Origin: Hyphochytrium catenoides
Taxonomy: Eukaryota; Protista; Hyphochytriomycota
Assembly (NCBI GenBank): GCA_900088475.1
Contig: FLMG01002209.1
Span: forward strand, 2,176-66,175
Direction: 5' to 3'
DNA length: 64,000 nt
Under the pieces are notes generated by a model. The model was not told the DNA's origin. It ran no database searches and saw only the letters and a program-made list of their open reading frames with translations. Every line of letters begins with the position of its first letter. The stretch's first letter is position 1. A program made the position numbers and the translations under genes. This document shows, in pieces, positions 46,830 through 62,223 of this stretch.

Positions 46830-49240
46830 TCTACCCGCCCCGATGTTGGCGTGAGAATCCGCCTACAGCCTGGGGAGGCTGCACCCATCCGGGTGTTCGA
46901 TGCGTTCAAGGCTACCGTGAAGAAGCATGGCTCCAAGAATGCTCTGTACACCCCTAAGGGCGATGGATGGTAGGGACCTCAAATGCATCTACTTTCGTCT
47001 CCTTTGTTGCTTGCTAACCGCTCCGTTCTCTTTTTCATCTTGAAGGAAAGTGCTTACTTTCCAGCAGTACTATGACCTCACCCTTGCCTTCGGAAAGGCC
47101 CTCATTGCCACCGGTTTCAAGCGCTATCAATCTGTGAACATTATTGGCTTCAACTCTGTGGAGTGGTTCATCTCCAATATGGGAGCTATCGCTGCTGGAG
47201 GTCTAGCTGCGGGCATCTACACCACCAATCTGCCTGACGCGTGCTTCTACATCTCGGAGCACTCGGAAGCGCACACAGTCGTTGTAGAGGACAAAACGCA
47301 GCTCATGAAGTACAAGGACATCTGCTCCAAGCTGCCACATCTCAAGCAGCTTGTCATTTACCAGGGAGGAGTACCAGAAGAAGCCAAGGATTTTTCTGTT
47401 CCTGTTTATGATTGGGCAGCCTTTCTTAAGCTGGGAGAGACAGTCTCGGTAAGCCAAGCACTGCACGCGCCATGTTCATTTGACGTGTCTCACCTATTCC
47501 ATTTGCTCTGTCCCTAGAACGACACCATTGAGGGTGTGATTGAGGCTCAGAAGCCAAACGAGGGCTGCACTCTCATCTACACCTCAGGCACCACCGGCCC
47601 TCCTAAGGCTGTGATGATCAGTCACGGTACGGCGGCATTTTAGAGTGTCCACACTTTCTACGTTCTATAGTATGCTCACGTTGTTTTCACAGATAACCTT
47701 GTATGGACAGCCAATAAGACCATCGAGACAATTGGAGGCGTTGACCACAACGATCGCATTGTTTCCTACCTTCCGCTTTCTCATATCGCCGCCCAGCTTC
47801 TGGACATCCACTCAGCTATCAATGCTGGAGTGCAGATCTACTTTGCAAAGCCTGACGCCCTCAAGGGATCTCTTGGTGCCACTTTAAAGCAGGTAGAGAC
47901 TAGACTGTTCCAGGGTCCAGGCCTATTTTTATGGCTTTATCGGACGCTAAAGAGTGATCTTCTTTTCCCAGGTCCGCCCTACAGTCTTCTTCGGTGTTCC
48001 TCGCGTTTGGGAGAAGATTATGGAAAAGATGCAGGAGATCGGCAAGTCTACCACCGGCGTAAAGAAGCAACTAGCAACCTGGGCTAAGGCAAAGGGCAAG
48101 GGCCGCTTTGAGATGGCACAGTATGGCAAGTCTGGCGGTGCGCCTTTTGGTTTTGGCTGCGCCCACGCCATCGTTCTATCCAAGGTGAAGGCTGCTCTCG
48201 GCCTGGATGCTTGCAGATTCTGCTTCACTGGTGCAGCGCCCATTGCTGTGGAATGCATCGGTACGCGAAAAGCGCAGATGGGCTGGTCTGCGCCATGTTG
48301 TTCTAACTCATCTCTGTCCTCTCCTCTTTGTCTCGGACAGAGTACTTTGGCTCCCTTGACATCCACATCTTCGAGCTCTTCGGCCAGTCCGAGTGCACTG
48401 GTCCTCAGACCATCAACATCCCACGCAAGTGGAGAGTAGGCAGCTGCGGCCCTGCCTTCACGGGCACCACCATGAAGCTCGGAGACCAGAACGAGCTGAT
48501 CTACTGCGGTAGGAACACTATGATGGGATACATGAAGGATGAGGTAAGCGGGGAGGCCTTTCCTTCTGAGTACCCTTCTTCGACACTATTGGCGTTTGTT
48601 TCTCTTCTTCCTTCTCGATGTCTCGCGTTAGGCTTAACGCTCAATGATCTCTCGCTCTCTTGCCTACTCATAGGCTAAGACTAAGGAGACCATTGACGAG
48701 GAGGGCTTCCTGCACTCCGGAGACGTTGCAAAGATTGACAGCGACGGATTCATGTCCATCACCGGACGTATCAAGGAGCTTATCATCACTGCTGGAGGAG
48801 AGAACATCCCTCCAGTGCTCATTGAGGATGCAATGAAGGATAGCATGAAGGCTATTGCAAACTGCATGGTCATCGGAGACAAGCGCAAGTTCCTTTCTAT
48901 GATCATTGCCCTCAAGGTTGAGATGGACGCAGAGGGACTCCCCACTAACAAGCTCACAGGAGATGCGCTCGCCATCAGCAAGGAGATCGGCAGCACTGCC
49001 ACAACCGTGCAGGAGGCTAAGGGCTGTGAGAAGTGGAAGAAGTACCTCGATGATGGGGTGAAGAGAGCGAACGAGAAGTCTACCTCCCGCGCGCAGCGTG
49101 TGAACAAGTGGACGATCATCAACGATGACTTTACTGTGTTAGGTGGAGAGCTAACGCCGACTCTGAAGCTTAAGCGCTCTGTTGTCGCTAACAAGTACAC
49201 CGACGTCATTGAGGAGATGTATAGCGGATCAGCCGAGTAA
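46830..49240 (+). CDS. ACSBG: Long-chain fatty acyl-CoA synthetase, bubblegum (ACSBG) type; exons 46830-46969, 47046-47448, 47518-47626, 47693-47892, 47972-48260, 48341-48543, 48674-49240. Start exon not located (gap at 46802-46812)
   Basis: AMP-binding [57 protein letters not shown] and [12 protein letters not shown]. All GT-AG junctions are in phase. Confidence 0.93.
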
Positions 49241-50671: not shown

Positions 50672-51922
50672 ATGTTCCTCTCTCTGTACATCATAAACAA
50701 GGCAGGAGGACTCATCTTCCAGTTGGATCTCACGTCTAATGCTCCGAAGCTGACTGGCAATGACTATTTAAGACTTGGGTCCACATTTCACGGCCTTCAT
50801 GTGATTGCGGCGCAGGTGATACTCTTTGTCTTGTTCAGTGAAAACGAGCCCTATTGGGAAAGCTAAGCCCTTTGGGCGTTCGGTGCAGGTTGCTCCAGTC
50901 GTCTCAGGAGGCATTGAGAGTCTAGAGACGGATACGTTTAAGCTTCACTGTCTGCAGACCCAAACTGGTCAGCAAGTTGATGCAGTTTCCTGTTAGCGAA
51001 CTTAGTTCTTGTTCTTCTCTCACTAGTTAGCGATCACAACTGACATCCCCTCGAGCTCCTTTTGAGCTTCTAGGCGCGGCTTCTCACTATTGACATTACT
51101 TCCGACAATCTTCAACTCAAACTTCACCCTTCCCATTCCTCTTTCTTTCCGCCATTTCTCGGTGCGACGCTTGCCTCTCTGCCTTGTAGGCACGAAGTTT
51201 TTCATCACAGCAGAGCCTGGCACCCAAGACCTTGAGCACGTGCTGCATGGCGTCTATGAGCTGTACACAGACTATGTGCTCAAGGTAACTCCAAACAAAC
51301 TTTGATGATTCCTCATTGGCCTTCTCTAGGTCCCGTCTGTCCGTGACCTTCTCTCTCTTTTACAGATGTGCCGCTCTTTACTCATCTATATCTCAATGCC
51401 TGACGTCTCTCCCTCCTTCAATGTGCGGAGCAGTCTCTCTTCATCTCTAGTCTTCTGCCTTCCAATTGAATCTCTCATAGAGAGAGAGTCTAGAAGTCGA
51501 TGCTCCCTCTTGTGACGATATGCCAACGTCTTAATATGGTGCTTCTTGTGCTGGTCTTTCCATTCCTGCATTGCACTCTACTCATCAAATCTTCCTTTTG
51601 ATTGCTCTACAATGAGGTTCAGTGTTGTTGCGCACAACCTTTGCTTTGTCTCAGTAGCTATGTTTGTCTATCTGTTCCGGCCGTCTCCGTCGCTGTATGG
51701 TCGCCCTTTCTGGTGGACTCGTTCTCATCTTCTCTGAACTCTTACTCTCTGACGATGACTGCTCTTGCCTTGCAGAATCCATTCTATGAACTGGAGATGC
51801 CAATCCGCTGTGATCTCTTCAATTACAAGCTGAAGCAGCTTATCGCCTCTTACTCACAGGACAAACGCAGGTCAACGGTGGACGCCAGGAGCTATGGACA
51901 TGACTTCCCCATTGCCCATTGA
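50672..51922 (+). CDS. TRAPPC4: TRAPP complex subunit 4 (Trs23/synbindin); exons 50672-50815, 50889-50967, 51190-51284, 51776-51922
   Basis: [80 protein letters not shown]. Confidence 0.95.
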
Positions 51923-52677: not shown

Positions 52678-55600
52678 CTACTCGTTACCTTGATCAGTAG
52701 CTCCATATCTGCCTGGGGGAACCTGTTGCTGCTGCTGCAGAAAGGCTGGGAGCGGTGTTGAAGCGTTTGGCTTCCTGGCGAAGGAGAAGCCTTCAAAATG
52801 ATTCTTCCCGTCTTCCACGCCCTTCATCTGACGCGCCAGCCCCGGCTTGTCCCCCAGCGACGGCTCCTTGAGCTCCTGCTGCACGATGTGCCTCGGTACA
52901 AACGCTACTTCGTCCTCTCCCACCTTCGGATCATAAGGCGGCCGGATCTGCTTCTGCAGCACCGCCTCCCAGTTGATTCCATGAAAGAATCGATGGCGGA
53001 AGACATCACGTCCTCCCAAGCGGCGAAGGGGATCGCGAATAAGGAGCTGGAGGTACAATTCGGCCAGACAAAGGAACAGAAAGGAACAGGGTTAGAAGAA
53101 TGATTAGTAGCTACATCAGGAAAAGCTAAGCGCTGGACTGGCGCTGGTGATCCACTCCTCAGAGCGAGAGACATGAGGATAAGAAGAGAGGGAACAAGGA
53201 GTATGCCGCGCACCCTCTGCACAATGTCAACAGCAGCGTCCGAGAAGTGCGCTGAGAAGGTGACCCATTCTTGCTTGAGAATTGTCTGGAACATGATCTC
53301 CCGGTTCTTATGGTAGTACGGAGGCTGCACAAGCCAGAGTCAGATATAAAAGACTATCGTGCGTCCCCAAGAGAGGGAGGAGAGAGAAGGGAACCCTGAC
53401 CACCACTGGAACCGCCATAGAGAGAGAGAAGGAAAGCATACTATCCTCACCGCTACTTAATGTCGCTCCCCCTTCTTCTCTTGGTGCTATCCCCTCCTGA
53501 TGTTCTCATCTTTCGTTCTCCCCTTCCAGTTCTTCCATGCACGCTCTCTCTCTCTCCCTCTCACGTTCTCTGTTTCTCTCTGAGCTCTAGGATTGCACTC
53601 ACCCTGCCCGCTATCATCTCATAGAGAAGCACGCCAAAGGACCACCAGTCAGCGGCCTTTCCATAAGCTTGGCCCTTCAGCAGCTCCGGCGCAATGTACG
53701 CCGCCGTTCCGCAGAAAGTCTTCGCTCCTCTAAGCCCGGAGACTCCGATTTTTGACAATCCAAAGTCAGTGATCGCCACATGGCCTTGAGAGTCTAGCAG
53801 GACGTTCTCAAGCTTTGCATCCCTGGTGGGGAGGAAAGAGACGAGCGGCGGAGAGTTAGACAGGACCGAGGCACACGGGACAGGTAGACGGGATGAAGAG
53901 ACAAAGGAAAAAGCTCAAGCTTCATCGACGTCGTGATTACTAGAAGGGAACTTCATGATCTGAGACAGGTTCCAAAGTCTTCTGCGTGACGCCACACAGA
54001 AACAGTAATATTCAGGGCTGAGGCAAGTAGTACGAGCGACCAGAGAGAGAGAGAGAGAGAGAGAGACAGAACGAGCATAAAAAAGAAAGGAGAGATAGCA
54101 AAACAAAAATAATGCTGGTGGACCTGTAGATAATGTTGAGGTTATGCAGGTGATGGATGGCAAGTGCAATCTCGGCCGCATAGAACTTTGCCATCTGCTC
54201 CGGAAACTTCCGCCACTTGCGCAAGTGGACGTTCAGGGATCCGCCGCTATGGGAAGAAAGAAGAGAAAGGAGGCAACACACGTCAATTTGGAACAGTGAG
54301 TAAAAAGGTTAGAGCGGCAAAGTACAATAATAACTCTCGTTGACACCCAGTTGAGGTCCGACAAGGTAAGTAAGGAAACTCTCCTGAATAATGTTGAGAG
54401 GTGGTTGCCAAGAGTAATAGAGAGCCAGAACTGCGGAAGAGACCAATGCCAGTATATATTCAGGGGAGAGAGCGCGAGAAAGGAAGAACCGTGACGGAAA
54501 GGAAGAGAAATAGTCGACCTCATATAACCCATAACAAGATAGAGTTTCTGGTCATTTTGAAAGGCGTAATGCAGCTTGACAATGAAAGGATGATTGATCT
54601 CCGTCAAGATGCGGCGCTCCGCCATCGTCGTCTTCACCAGCCCAGAAGACAGAATGCTCTTCTTGAGCAGCACCTAGATGGCAGAGGGAGTAGCTTAGTG
54701 CAGGGTAAAAGACTAAAGATAATAAATAATATATGGCATAAGATAGTGACTATGGCATAGTGGAGTTAGCTACAATCAGTCTTCGAGAAAGAAAGAGAGA
54801 AAGAAAGAGAGAAGAGAAGACACAATAAACTCGCATAAAGAGAGACACGTGGTGGTTATCTCACGGACCTTCATGGCATAGTAGGTTCCTGCATCCTCTC
54901 CTGTCTTCTTCCTAACCAAAAAGACCTTCCCAAATCCTCCCTGGCCGATCACTTGCTTCAAGTCGAAGTCAGTGTCGACACTTAGGTTTGCAGAGTCATC
55001 CTCCTCCTGCTCCTTCTGCTCGAGAGATGGGTCGTACGGGTTCTGTGTGCACGTGTGTTAGCGTGCAAGAGAGAGAGAGAGAGAGAGCCGAGAGAGGGGC
55101 CGGGAAGGAGATGAGAAGAAAGACACAGGGAGAGAGTGTGTGCGCACGCGTGAGAGAGAAAGTGAGGTCAACAGTCAGAAAAGAAAAGAAGAGGAAGGGC
55201 ACAGGACTCATAGAAGGACGACGGGCTTCAGAGACAGAATAAAGGTGGCCATAACTCGAGGGAGAGGCAAAAGAATTGCAAGGAAACTGCACAAAGAACG
55301 CAGGATAACAAAACATCGAGAGATCAACGACATGTTATAGGGAAAGGCTTTCTGACATCGTAAGGCGACGGTTGCTGCTGGGTGTAGGTCATGGCTGCTG
55401 CACTGTCCTGGTATGCTGGCTCTGGTCCTTGGTGCGATGCACGGACAGAAAGAGGGGGTAAGGGGGAGCGAGAGAGACCGTGAGCGAGGAAGAGTAATAT
55501 TGACACAGGTTATTGTGGTTGCGTTGTGAAATGAGGAGATGATGAGAGAGGATGACGTAGCCACCTCCAGATACTTTCTTGAGAGCTGTAAAAGAGAGGC

Positions 55601-56235
55601 CCAGATTGACCGCTTACTGACCTGCTGGAGGATTGAAGCCCTGGAACGCTGACTCGCGGCGCGGGATGGGCGAGCTCGAGGGCTGAAAGAGAGGCAACAG
55701 GGAGAAAGAATAGCGCGGTGAGGAAGAAGAAGAAGAAGTGCCTTTCAGACAGGTTGAATGTCACCACCTTCTCTAGACACAGATCCTCGTAATAGAAGAC
55801 GGCACCAGGATGAACAAGGAGAGAAGGAGTGGAGATCCTACCCTTAGTGGAGAGCTAGAAGGCGGGCGCACGACAGCTCTGATCGCCTTCACAATGGCGG
55901 TCATGGAGGTCTCTGCAGGGTCGGTCCCTAGCAGAGCCATCACGGAGCTCTGAGCGCCACGGAGGATATGAGAGGGCGAGGAAGGTTGAGAGGCATCTGG
56001 CGGAGGGAGAGAGAGGCATACGCATCCCACTCTTCCCTGTTCCTTCGAAAGCTGAGTGGCAATCGTTGTCTGCGCGATCTCCCAGTTAATGGCCTGACGA
56101 AGAAAATTGCCAGTTAGAAGAAGTACAAGCTCATGAAAGAGACATCCGACTGGCATTCGAGGGAGCAAGGACTTCAATGTCGGCTCCAGTGAAGTTCAAG
56201 GTAGGGAGTCACAGGATAATGGAGAAGGGAAAGAG

Positions 56236-56267
<32 letters not shown>

Positions 56268-59200
56268 CAAGAGAGAGAGAGAGAGTAGAGAATGACCGAG
56301 AGCCATTCATAAAGATTAATGAGAGATAAGTGAAAAGAGGTCTGGATACCTTCTTGGCAAGTAGCTGTAGCACGGTGTATGTCTCTGTTTTGTCTATGAT
56401 GTGCTTCGACTCAATAAACGCGATGCGGTGGAGCTTCTCCCGCAGCTGAATCTCATGAGTCTGCAGTAGAGTCTTTACGAGGGAGCCTCCTCGACCGTAG
56501 GCAATAAAGGAAACTTGGCCTACAGAGGTAGGACGAGGATCAGGCGAGGCAGACAGCAGAAAACGTTGACAGGAGGCAATACTTGCACAGAGGGAGAGAG
56601 AGAGCGCGAGAGAAACTAGCAGACGGAGCAGCCGCAGTAAGAAGGGAGCAGGATAAGGAGGTAGAAATGAGCGAAAAAAGCGAACGAGACAGCAATACAA
56701 GGGCAGGGAGTGAGTAAAAGAGAGAGACAGAACCAAGAGGAGAATGTGTGAAGACAGAGAGAGAGCGGCGAGAGGGATCCTCTTTACCTTGACAGTTGAG
56801 GAGATAAGTATTCCATAGATAGTTCATATGTTCTAGCGGCGTGGAGGACTGCGGCACGGGCAACACTCTCTCCACTCCTTCTTCGAACACAGTGCTCGTG
56901 TTGCTGTAAGGGTTAGAGAGAAGGACAGCATAACCGGCCTGCAGACAAGAGGCGATCATGGCTTCCATTGACCAAGGATCTTCTCTCGAAGGGAGAGGGT
57001 AGGCCGACTCTTGCTTCCACAGTCCCACCTGATGACAAGGAAAGAGCCACATGAGAAGGAGAGACCAAGAGACAGAGATAACAGAACCCGGAGAGACTGA
57101 AGCGAGTGAGAGAGAAAGAGCGAGAGCACACGCGCGCGAGAGAGAAAGAGAGACGGAGAGAGAGAAAGAAGAAGAGAGAGTGCATTGCTCACCTGTCCAC
57201 TATCTGCTACAAAGGCCACCACTGACGCTGCGGAGCCTGCATTTGGAGACCAATAGATTTTGCAGCGCAAGACAGAGTTGTCTGACGGAATGTATGAGGG
57301 CCTTAGACCATACTGAGACTCCAAGACAGAGAAGAGAGAAGAGGCTTTATACTCTGGAGACCGGGAGGCGTACTCCTGCCCATTTCTCTCTCTCTCTCCT
57401 CCCTGCCCTCCTCGCATAGCGGACATCTCTAGCGCCCGAGGAGGGGCAACCCGTGAAGAGAGACCGCGCGGAGGGGGCGGGTAAGCCTCAGGAATGTCTT
57501 GAGAGATTCTCTCGTCGACTGGAACATAGTCTGAGGCCTCGTGGACATTAAGAAAGGCGTCTGGATCTTCACTGAATCTTCCTCCTTCCTCTCCTCTCTC
57601 TTCCACGCCTCTTGGAGGATAATCAACAGGCACAGAGCGGAACTCTGTCTCGTCACTGAGGCGGAGTCTGGAGACTGCTGACGCGGGAGGAGCATCTACC
57701 GGGACACTAGCAAAGGCTTCTTCCTCATCCCCAGCGCCGCCACTCTCCCTTCCTCCTGCAGTCGCTGTGGCTGACCTTCTTCCTCCTCCCGATCCTCCTG
57801 ATCGACTGCTGGCTGACTCTTCAGAGATAGGCATCAGATTCTTTACATCTACAGGAGAGAGTTGCCTCTCCTTGTCCTTCCCTAGTATTATTCCTCCGTC
57901 AGACGGAGGTGGAGAAGCGGAGGCAGAGCGGACAACCTTCTCTTCTTCTTCTATTCGTGTTTGTGCCAGCTCCTCTGTGATATCATTGGAAACTATGGAG
58001 CTGTCCCTATGTTGCACCCCTTCCTCCCCTTCTGTCTTTAGCACGGCCAAAAGCAGCGTCCTTGCGCCCTCAAAAAGCTCTTGATTGCTCGTCTCGTCGT
58101 TCTCCTCCACAGCCTCGATGGTCCCAGGAGCCGGGCTCTCCATATCAACATCGTACGCCGCCTGTCCTTCCTCTTCGGCCTGTTCTGCTGTGCGTACCGC
58201 GGGGATATCGGTCGCACTCTTGACTGCCCGAGGAGGAGGAAGAGGAGGCGAAGCAGCAGGCACGGCTTCTCTTGAGCTTGTAGGGCTTCCTCTGGGCACC
58301 CCCGCAGTGTAGACAGAAGGGATCTCTCTGTCGCTGACGGGCCTTCCTCTGCCTGGAAGAGAGGATGGAGGTCCTCCTCCCACTGTGGCCACTGCAGGGA
58401 TGTCATTGGCGCTCTGGGCTACTCGTCGCCTCACTGCGACACTTCCCCTTGCCCTAAGGGCTGCGGGCACGTCAGAGTCATCCATAGGCTTAGTGTAAGG
58501 GGTAGAGGACGTTCGCCTGGTAGAGATGAGGAGAAGAGGATCGGACAGAAAGTTGTGAGCCAACCCATGTCCGCTTTCTCTTCTTTCTCTCTCGCTGGCC
58601 CTACGCTGGTGGTCTCTTTATATGGGTCACGTCCTACTGCTCCCAGAAAAGCTCCAGCTACTTAACGCGTCTTTTTTACCCTATCTAGTTGCGTCTATGG
58701 AGACTGTTTTTTACTTCTCTCTCTCTCTCTTGCTCTCTCTCTCTATGTTCTGTCTCAGAATTAGCCTTCTCCCTTCTCTCTACTTCCGCTGACAACGTTT
58801 TCTGGCCTTCGTCATACCTGCCAAAGTTCATGCTTGCTCTAATTTGTTCCTCAGGCGGGCTGGCCCGACGAGGAATAAGAGACGCTCTGCTGTCCATCGC
58901 ACCAGGCAGCTTCCTCGATGCACCAGCAATACTAGCCCCTGCCGTGGGATCATCATCTCCACCTAGAGAGAGTGAGAGTGAGAGAGACGAACATGGGAGA
59001 GAGAGAGAGAGAGAGAGAGACAGAAAAAGACGGGTGGAGCGTGTAATCAAAGAGAAAGACCGAGACAGATAGCCTACAATTCCTCTCCTAGTCTCCTGGC
59101 TATAGACTCAGGACAATCAATCCTCATTCTCTGTGCGTGTCTGTGTGTTCGTCTTTCTCCACAAATCCTCTCTCTTTGCCTAATTCCCCTTCTTCCCTAT

Positions 59201-60161
59201 GCCTTGGTACTCCGTACTCACCAGCTACTTTGGCCCCACAAATGCCACAGAACTTCTGATTTGCCTTGACAATCGCCTTGCAGATGTCACAGCGCACTCC
59301 CGCCGACTGTTGGCGACTCCCATCCAGCGCCGCAATCCAGCGCTGCCGCTGCTTATTATTCTCTGCACAGACGTAGTACGGCTCCCCGTCCGCTGTGTAG
59401 AACATAAAGGAGAAAGCGGACCATTCGGGGCGGGGCGAGAACTCTGAATAATCTCTCACTTTGGTCACCACCACTGTTTTCTTAGGCTTCGCTCCCACTC
59501 TGGCTTTCTCTTGATCCTCATAGTAGCTGAGACTTGACCCGCGAAGGACAAAGAATCGCCTTCTCCAGTTTTTTCTTCTGTGTCCTTGCTTCACGAGATA
59601 TCCTGAGAACGTGACGCCCTCAGCGTTGAACTCTGGCATCCCTTCCAGTTGTGCTCCTCCTCCTCCTCCTCCTGTCCCTCCCGCTCCTCCGCCTATCTTT
59701 GTAGTGAGAGAGAGAGAGCCCACGCCTCCCGCTCCTGCTCCTCCCACTCCTGCTGTCTGAACCCTCTGCAGCGCCGCCAGCCAGCGCTGACAGTCTGCTT
59801 CTGACTCTGCATAGCAATACCAGGCGTCCGAGCCCGCAGGAGAGCGGACGAGAAAGCCGTAAGGTTTCTCAGGGAAAGGCTCTGCTTGTCCGACTTCAAT
59901 GCTCTGCGTGTTGCTCCCTCTGTGTCCTCCATCTCTGTCTGTGGAGGCGTACAGAATGCTGCCAGACAGAGTGAGATATCGCTTCTGATAAAGGCCCCAA
60001 GACGCCTTTCGAAAGCAATATCCCTCGCATGTGACTGGCAGAGAGAAGGCGGAGGACGGGGCTGTGCTCTCTGTCTCGCCGCTAGCGTCGGAAGAGAGAG
60101 GAAGACCGAAGTTTCCTCTTTGGGCAGAAGAGATGCCCATTGACTGCCGAAGGCGGTCCAT
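52678..60161 (-). CDS. PH-PH-zinc ribbon-ARB2(FAM172)-AGC Ser/Thr kinase, ~1,450 aa; exons 60161-59222, 58962-58818, 58516-57193, 57028-56788, 56519-56350, 56093-55842, 55682-55622, 55427-55357, 55042-54869, 54673-54519, 54246-54124, 53822-53603, 53324-53214, 53046-52678
   Basis: Two PH domains (EGYCFRK...QRWLAAL; [21 protein letters not shown]...QRWIAAL), CDIC...CGIC, ARB2 blocks, and kinase motifs [28 protein letters not shown]...APE, DWWSFG with hydrophobic motif FEGFSF. All 13 introns are GT-AG and phase-consistent; the modelled CDS is 4,356 nt. Confidence 0.85.
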
Positions 60162-60169
60162 CCTTCTCT

Positions 60170-61305
60170 ATTGAAGAGAAAAGAAGAGAGAGAGAGAGAA
60201 AGAGGGAGAGAGATGGCGCACTGCAAGAGAGACAGATGTATCTTTATGGCTGGGTTTCTACTGCGTAAGATTGTGGAGAGAAAGAGAAATGAAAGAGAGA
60301 CAGATTAGGGTTAGATGGCAGTAGAAGAGTGCAAGAGAGAGAGAGAGAGAGAGAGAGTGAGAGAGAGAAAGAATGAGGTCACTTTGAAGATAACAGCCAC
60401 CAAGACCCCAAATGGACAGCGGTTGTGCACTTATGCATAACAAGCAGACAAATGTGGGGGAGAGAGAAAGGGAGAGAGAAAGGGAGAGAGAGAGAGACAG
60501 ATAGACAGACAGGCAGACAGAGAGAGAGAACAAGCGTAGGAATGTATAGAGAGGCCCTTTAGTCCGAAGGACGAAGGAAGAGGAAGCAGAATTTAGACCT
60601 TTCACTTCATGGTGCCAATAAAGGAGAACGAAAGGAGTAAATCGCCTGCAACCACCTGGCTCTACAGAGAGAGAGAGAGAGAGAGTGTGTCAGTGTCCGG
60701 GTCAACCTCAGCATGTCTCTCTTAGCATCTCTCTCTCTCTCTCTCTGTCCCTACGTCTTCTCTCTCCTCTCTCTTTCCGGACCTCTGCTTTCCCTCCTTC
60801 TTTGGCCCTGCTGACCTTCGCTATGAAGCGCTGTGATGCCCTTGTTTTTCCTTACAGTCGAGGTCGTGCGCCGTTATTCGGCCGCTAGACAATGTGTGTC
60901 TCTCTCTCTCCAGAGAGAGACAAGATCAGAGAAGAAACCCAATAAAGAGAGACGAAGAGAAGAGACAGATTGTGGGGGATCTGATGGGAAATGTACGACC
61001 GAGCTGACTAGAAGAGCTTTTGCCAGCTTTTTGGTTAGAGAGAGAGAGAGACACACACAGAAAGAAGTGTGGATTTGGTGCCGCGACCTTCGTTTTCCCT
61101 TACCTTCCATCACCGGCGGTCTCGATGCTAATAGATTAACCACCAGGGTCAGAACGATACCCTAGTGCTCTCTCTGTCTCTCTCTCTCTCGGTCTCTCTC
61201 TGTCCCTCTTTCTCCCTCTCTCTCTCTTGACACTCTCTCTGTTTATCTCTCACACTCTCTCTCTCTGTCCGCTCTCCCTCTCCCTCTCCCTCTCTTACCT
61301 CTCGT

Positions 61306-61348
<43 letters not shown>

Positions 61349-62223
61349 NNNNNNCTCTCTCTCTCTCTCTCTCTCTCTCCCTCCCAATCCTCTCCACTTC
61401 CCTCTCTTACCCCTTCTTCAGCCTCGTTCTGCTCTGTCTCTTTCCCTGTGTGTCTCTATCGACTCTCTTTGTGAGCCCTTAGGCAGTCCGTAAGCCCACT
61501 CTGTCTTGCGCTCTGTCTCGGAGCGCCTGAGCAATTGCATTTTGGCTCTTTCTCTTCCCAATGGTTTAGAGCCATGTCGTCCTCACTCTGTCTCAACGAT
61601 TCAATATTCTGTCTCTTTATATACCCTTATTAAGCTCTGGATTTGTCTACCTTATCAATTAACAGACGTATATCGTTGTCGCTCTGACTGCCGCTCACAA
61701 GGATATTCATAACCCCGAGCTAGCAGAGGACTTAGTGTACCCAAACCTTCTCCCCCAACACCACAACAACACACTCAAAAGGTGCGAGTTTACTATGGGA
61801 AACCTATAAAACAGACCGGTACACACGGTTAACATAGATTCACCTGATTACTCTTTAGCCGCCCTGCCTTACCTTTGTTAATCAATAATTCTCTTAAGTC
61901 CCGATTATCAGCCGTATGGCTGAGCTACTGCACCGATGTCTGGGTATAACCCGTTCTTAATATAATTCTCATTGAGTTTGTCCTGTCGCCCGAATATTGG
62001 CCGCTGCCAAGTCTAGAGGTCCCACCCATGATAATAATACGTCGAGAGGGTGAAGATAGATAGAGGCTTTAATGTTAAGAGCGAGGGATAGTAATACAGA
62101 CCCAGACCGCAACGGGAAACAGAATTCTAGGAGAGTCAGTGTCTTCCCCTATTTCTCTCTCTCTCTCTCTCTCTCTCNNNNNNNNNNNNNNNNNNNNNNN
62201 NNNNCTCTCTTTCTCTCTTCTCC

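Follow-up and report, generated by a model that had tools for sequence, protein, structure and literature searches.

A probable intron-rich member of the oomycete PH–zinc ribbon–Arb2–AGC kinase family in Hyphochytrium catenoides

Evidence for a single fused gene

A 64,000-nt stretch of Hyphochytrium catenoides DNA (contig FLMG01002209.1, positions 2,176 to 66,175), referred to here as the window, contains a coding region at 52678–60161 whose exons encode, in order, a pair of PH domains, a zinc ribbon and a long linker, and then an Arb2-like domain followed by a complete AGC kinase. It is likely that this region is one protein-coding gene, the counterpart of an oomycete family with the design PH–PH–PH/zinc ribbon/Arb2/AGC kinase, in an intron-rich relative of the oomycetes. 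All positions are given in the forward-strand numbering of the window; the gene and its features are on the minus strand.

When five oomycete-type proteins were compared with the window by tblastn, all were colinear on the minus strand with exon 1 (E1, 60161–59222), the tail of E3 (58516–57193), E4 (57028–56788), E5 (56519–56350) and E6 (56093–55842). Four of the five, those with a kinase domain, additionally match E9 (55042–54869), E10 (54673–54519), E11 (54246–54124), E12 (53822–53603), E13 (53324–53214) and E14 (53046–52678), in that order. The ends of the high-scoring segments coincide with predicted splice sites, and in the ortholog alignment no gap separates the tail of E3 from E4, E4 from E5 or E5 from E6 (DSGQ/VGLW, NCQ/(G)QVSF and LAKK/AINWE). 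In Pythium oligandrum, a single uninterrupted open reading frame (ORF) begins at the N-terminus and, over 1459 aa, takes in the PH domains, Arb2 and most of the kinase. The fusion is therefore considered to be real, because these parts share one uninterrupted frame in that species. Likewise, a metagenome protein that extends from the PH domains into the kinase is a single ORF on its contig, as is a full-length family protein from a Logan run assembly.

The gene model was rebuilt independently from the sequence and then checked by script for GT–AG borders, phases and stops. It has 14 exons and 13 introns, with 4356 nt of coding sequence, 1451 codons plus a TAG stop codon at 52680–52678. All 13 introns are GT–AG and 159–314 nt in length, the phase continues from exon to exon, and none of the 14 exons has an in-frame stop. 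The initial annotation had joined 14 exons in one frame from the PH domains to the AGC kinase, and the same model was obtained here, including the junctions that it had named (59222^58962, 58818^58516, 55842^55682, 55427 and 55357^55042). The Arb2-like blocks and the kinase motifs TFCGT and FEGFSF that it had quoted are all present in the sequence. An 81-nt GT...AG stretch within exon 6 (56030–55950) was considered as an additional intron and rejected, because the encoded RVGCVCLS is conserved in all relatives.

The alternative is that two or three neighbouring genes have been wrongly joined, with a PH–zinc ribbon gene ending in intron 1 and an Arb2–kinase gene starting in exon 3. In its favour, the link between E1 and E3 hangs on exon 2 (58962–58818), which has no homology, and read-through past the first donor reaches a stop at 59124; in addition, a look-up of RNA runs for the 7.5-kb stretch listed none, and the junctions are predicted from frame, GT–AG borders and homology. 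However, these parts are united in one protein in all full-length orthologs, and, in Pythium, within a single ORF without interruption. Exon 3 is open over 1.3 kb and carries a linker motif between the zinc ribbon and Arb2, as in the orthologs, and the N-terminal parts of the family match nothing outside E1 in the tblastn and upstream profile searches. Wrong joining of neighbours is considered to be very unlikely.

Several further points weigh against a single gene of this family, or against parts of that interpretation, in addition to the nature of the predicted junctions. Exons 2, 7 (55682–55622) and 8 (55427–55357) have no homology support and were placed solely by frame and GT–AG borders, as was most of exon 3. 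Exons 7 and 8 are together 132 nt and the frame is kept if both are skipped, therefore the fusion is independent of them. The ATG at 60161 is only a putative start codon, and the first PH domain of the orthologs gave no significant match in the 3.8 kb upstream, either by tblastn (E 10) or with a profile of 63 ortholog segments. Scored as separate exon pieces, the window stays under the Pfam gathering score for Arb2 (PF22749, 26.8 bits), at 10.7 bits for exon 4 (profile 166–191) and 15.2 bits for exon 5 (profile 194–249, colinear with the exon 4 match). Finally, the lipid binding, activation and dimerisation proposed below would all follow from what is known of the domain families, and no experimental study of any PH–Arb2–AGC family member was found in the literature searched.

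N-terminal region

Searches of the ORF pieces with Pfam found the PH domain twice (E 1.5e-29), in agreement with the tandem PH domains proposed in the initial annotation. PH domain 1 (59760–60029) is covered by two stretches of the Pfam match and by the ortholog alignment, in which it aligns with the second of the three oomycete PH domains; it is without the basic K-x-G...R-x-R motif. PH domain 2 (59325–59612; residues 184–279 by Pfam) holds a conserved 14-residue basic strand, where the orthologs carry KQGHKRKSWKKRYF, and by its sequence this is likely to be the phosphoinositide-binding domain. In the alignment, the two PH domains of the window protein correspond to the second and third of the orthologs. 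They are followed by a zinc ribbon with four cysteines in the spacing C-x2-C-x10-C-x2-C (59229–59300). This region scores 22.8 bits with Pfam Zn_ribbon_3, under the cut-off of 27, and all four cysteines are conserved in all aligned orthologs.

Exon 3 is largely of low complexity and unconserved, except for a motif of 15 residues at 58036–58080. As a 13-residue motif, it is near-invariant in the 60 long family proteins from oomycetes that were examined, in which it is placed between the zinc ribbon and Arb2, at approximately residues 545–565 in the Pythium ortholog P0003. It is preceded by an acidic run. The match to this motif establishes the reading frame of exon 3 at a point well upstream of Arb2. 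No description of the motif was found in the literature searched.

Central domain

The Arb2-like alpha/beta domain (55866–57342) is encoded by the tail of E3 and by E4–E6, with three internal introns, and its extent is given by the gap-free oomycete alignment. The orthologs aligned in this way score 43–53 bits with PF22749, passing the Pfam cut-off, and in them PF22749 outscores PF09757. Exon 4 alone (80 aa), compared with 1.84 billion representative proteins, found 13 matches, of which 12 have Pfam Arb2 over the cut-off. The majority are long proteins from oomycetes (Pythium oligandrum, Saprolegnia diclina, Aphanomyces, Achlya and Lagenidium) in which two or three PH domains and a zinc ribbon accompany Arb2 and Pkinase. 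Exon 4 also matches stand-alone, FAM172A-like Arb2 proteins (P0006, E 2.3e-10; P0010, P0012 and P0013, E <1e-3), which score 55–94 bits with Pfam Arb2. The window's own protein was not found in this library, in which the best match to exon 4 is 36–46 % identical. Sequence searches of the PDB with exon 4, exon 5 and a family profile gave nothing relevant.

The fold comparison was made on an ortholog and not on the protein of the window. The Pythium domain (P0003:780–1070), modelled by AlphaFold with the family alignment, has a pLDDT of 87.7. Foldseek of this model against 350,000 chains placed Hda1 first (6z6f, 5j8j) and Clr3 sixth, and VIA-align gave Z 18.8 for Clr3 and 17.9, 17.3 and 17.1 for Hda1, with ordinary hydrolases at 14.3 or lower. 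On the modelled fold and the profile scores of the orthologs, the middle domain is Arb2 for the family, and the ARB2 assignment of the initial annotation stands. The closest solved folds are those of Hda1 (5j8j, 6z6f) and Clr3 (5ikk), with Z 17–19 over approximately 206–211 aligned residues and 10–12 % identity. In these proteins Arb2 is inactive, hydrolase-like and dimerising, and is fused to a deacetylase. FAM172A/ARB2A and fission yeast Arb2 share Pfam PF22749, the best match of the orthologs' domain. They are stand-alone proteins, nuclear or chromatin-linked, whereas the Arb2 domain of the window is inside a kinase; the FAM172A domain is split by a nuclear localization signal, and that of the window has no such insert.

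The alpha/beta hydrolase fold raises the question of an active serine hydrolase, an esterase or lipase acting on lipid bound by the PH domains. Many esterases match the ortholog model at Z 12–14, and a serine is present at the nucleophile elbow in one ortholog, from Lagenidium. Nevertheless, the residue at the elbow varies across the family (A, G, Q, H or S), being a glycine in the window (AYGRGG) and A, G, Q or H in nearly all relatives. There is no conserved histidine in the alignment after the last core strand, and the loop following CVCLS varies in both length and sequence. Because the nucleophile position varies and a conserved histidine is lacking, the domain is very probably not an enzyme, as judged from the alignment. 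Arb2 has been described as an inactive hydrolase-like interaction domain, and the triad is missing from the solved Arb2 domains (PMC11878206). A hydrolase in this position is considered to be extremely unlikely. Dimerisation through Arb2 has been reported for Hda1, Clr3 and FAM172A (PMC10205598).

Kinase domain

The AGC kinase catalytic domain (52984–54967) is encoded by E9–E14 and was identified from Pfam Pkinase matches to pieces of exons 9–12, identity to the orthologs and PDB matches. The catalytic motifs are complete in exons 9–12 (G-loop, VAIK lysine, alphaC glutamate, catalytic aspartate and asparagine, DFG and APE). The T-loop threonine in TFCGT lies within E12 and is conserved in the orthologs, and the hydrophobic motif FEGFSF of the AGC C-terminal tail (52780–52797), read from the sequence, is FRGFSF or FDGFSF in the orthologs. 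Over the kinase exons E9–E13, the window is 43–86 % identical to the orthologs. The catalytic core is intact and Akt/SGK/RSK-like, in agreement with the complete AGC kinase of the initial annotation. Among solved structures, E12 matches PKC-beta and Akt2 at approximately 1e-24, the best for E12 and the ortholog kinase together are Akt2, PKC, RSK and SGK, all AGC members, and for the ortholog kinase Akt2 is best (1.5e-90), followed by RSK1, SGK1 and S6K1.

At the junction of E11 and E12 (54124/53822), the catalytic loop reads YRDAKLEN, with alanine and leucine where most kinases have leucine and proline. YRDAKLEN is common to the two orthologs that were fully read (P0009 and PITG_20562 of Phytophthora infestans), and a paralog of a second oomycete group, P0011, has YRDVKLEN.

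Akt/PKB is similar in that a PH domain precedes an AGC kinase that has a T-loop threonine and a hydrophobic motif, and Akt2 is the best PDB match of the ortholog kinase. In Akt/PKB proper, however, a single PH domain is directly N-terminal of the kinase. This arrangement is not that of the window protein, which has two PH domains and, between these and the kinase, a zinc ribbon, a linker of approximately 450 aa and an Arb2 domain of 270 aa. The kinase is as close to RSK, SGK and S6K as it is to Akt.

Relationship to oomycete proteins

Fusions of Arb2 with AGC kinases were reported, as a novel combination, in P. infestans (Judelson and Ah-Fong 2010; PMC3019232). The initial annotation, in which no characterized ARB2–kinase fusion was known, was therefore mistaken on this point, and the exact design seen here is catalogued as well, with precomputed PH, Arb2 and Pkinase domains together in at least 40 oomycete proteins. 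In the literature search, this 2010 kinome paper alone mentions Arb2 with oomycete AGC kinases. Its table includes PITG_06776 (Arb2, C2, FYVE) and PITG_01365 (FYVE, Arb2), both AKT-type kinases. As the first published Arb2–kinase fusions, these resemble the window protein in combining Arb2, an AGC kinase and a membrane-lipid-binding module. They differ in that Arb2 is N-terminal, FYVE or C2 is present instead of PH, the length is approximately 890 aa, and the kinase is of the YRDLKLEN subfamily.

The P. infestans ortholog of the window gene is PITG_20562. In the supplement of the same paper it is a 1559 aa AGC/RSK kinase with YRDAKLEN, listed with 'PH, 2x' only and no note of Arb2; in current precomputed Pfam annotation, Arb2 is present. 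The AGC/RSK/MSK kinase listed just before PITG_20562 (supplementary table 1 of PMC3019232) has an unannotated Arb2-like N-terminal region, with the blocks GIWSRS, VVILNP, FVAFSRG, VEPSH and HGCVCVSAG, then a FYVE-like cysteine cluster. With this third Arb2-like kinase in P. infestans, the oomycete Arb2–kinase fusions exceed the two that were counted.

A search by sequence words from the Arb2 region of Pythium found 47 proteins, most carrying PH, Arb2 and Pkinase, and those that are named are all from oomycetes, across Pythium, Phytophthora, Peronospora, Hyaloperonospora, Plasmopara, Peronosclerospora, Nothophytophthora, Globisporangium, Lagenidium, Aphanomyces, Saprolegnia and Achlya. Members such as PITG_20562, TMW67046.1 of P. 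oligandrum and XP_008617065.1 of S. diclina, named 'AGC/RSK/RSKP90 protein kinase' in UniProt, have the same domain order as the window protein, with PH, zinc ribbon, linker motif, Arb2, YRDAKLEN and F-x-G-F-S-F colinear. The window gene differs in having 13 introns, where the Pythium family gene has about one, and two PH domains found, where the oomycete family has three at the N-terminus. It is a divergent member of a known, catalogued family; what is new is the intron-rich copy, the two PH domains and the linker motif, and its discovery value is incremental.

Over 835 conserved columns, the identity of the window copy to every oomycete member is 43–48 %, compared with 63–94 % within the main oomycete group and 51–55 % between this group and a second paralog group. 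The low identity, the 13 introns and the two PH domains fit a lineage outside the crown oomycetes, and on these features the gene is probably from such a lineage. The PH–Arb2–AGC kinase design is probably older than the two oomycete paralog groups, since by sequence identity these groups are closer to each other than the window copy is to any oomycete member.

Family members are found as tandem neighbours on the same strand in Aphanomyces euteiches (L001, 1–2417 and 3001–6919) and in P. oligandrum (L002, 1–753 and 1501–6006). The Aphanomyces astaci protein P0001 (2041 aa) lacks a kinase and has four PH matches and two stretches of Arb2; it looks like two neighbours merged by annotation.

5′ end and flanking sequence

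The true 5′ end of the gene may be upstream of 60161. The only upstream match to the orthologs is an 11-residue helix-like stretch at approximately 60640, which is not significant (tblastn E 0.1, profile E 0.9). It corresponds to a possible upstream mini-exon encoding ARWLQAIYSF (60631–60664), which is like the last helix of a PH domain and adds to the uncertainty at this end. The frame of ARWLQAIYSF is preceded by a CT-rich tract and AG. An AG is also present immediately upstream of the ATG at 60161 and in frame with it (60168–60170), and an acceptor-like ctctctgccag is found at approximately 60033, exactly where homology to the orthologs starts. The 3.8 kb upstream of the gene are GA/CT-rich and contain two short assembly gaps, N runs at 61349–61354 and 62178–62204 within long GA/CT dinucleotide repeats.

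Downstream of the kinase gene there are two spliced genes on the opposite (plus) strand, an AMP-binding gene (acyl-CoA synthetase-like, 47050–49240) and a gene for a Sybindin-family TRAPP subunit (50672–51919). The flanking sequence fits the limits of the gene.

Possible function

From its domains, the protein would be brought to phosphoinositide-bearing membrane by the basic strand of PH domain 2. The kinase would be activated in the AGC manner, with both the T-loop (TFCGT, PDK1-type) and the hydrophobic motif (FEGFSF) being phosphorylated. The Arb2 domain, as a catalytically dead fold, may be a module for dimerisation or partner docking, as in Hda1, Clr3 and FAM172A, and the near-invariant linker helix is a candidate regulatory element, binding within the molecule or to a partner.

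The initial annotation proposed the Arb2 domain as a docking site for Argonaute, for histones or for other proteins of chromatin or RNA silencing, by which the kinase would link phosphoinositide signalling to silencing. The domain is indeed on the FAM172A/Arb2 side, with PF22749 scoring above PF09757 in the orthologs, and FAM172A binds AGO2, while the Arb2 domain of Hda1 binds histones and RNA polymerase II (PMC10205598, PMC6753149). However, the sequence holds no evidence of a nuclear location or of an Argonaute partner, the proposal being derived from the domain name alone, and the Arb2 fold is a generic interaction scaffold. Moreover, oomycete Arb2 occurs in several AGC kinase designs, always next to PH, FYVE or C2. 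This constant association with lipid-binding modules speaks for Arb2 regulating the kinase close to the membrane, and against a role in chromatin. A link from this kinase to silencing by such docking is considered to be very unlikely, and for the kinases of the oomycete–hyphochytrid lineage in general it is slightly less likely still that Arb2 binds Argonaute or chromatin proteins. If it did, AGC signalling under phosphoinositide control would be coupled directly to RNA silencing or to the deacetylation of histones.

For the family as a whole, the conserved parts of the window copy mark what matters: the basic strand of PH domain 2, the four-cysteine ribbon, the linker helix, the dead Arb2 domain and YRDAKLEN. 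The oomycetes include major pathogens of crops and fish, and basic research could reasonably be directed at a lineage-restricted kinase family whose regulatory module is unusual.

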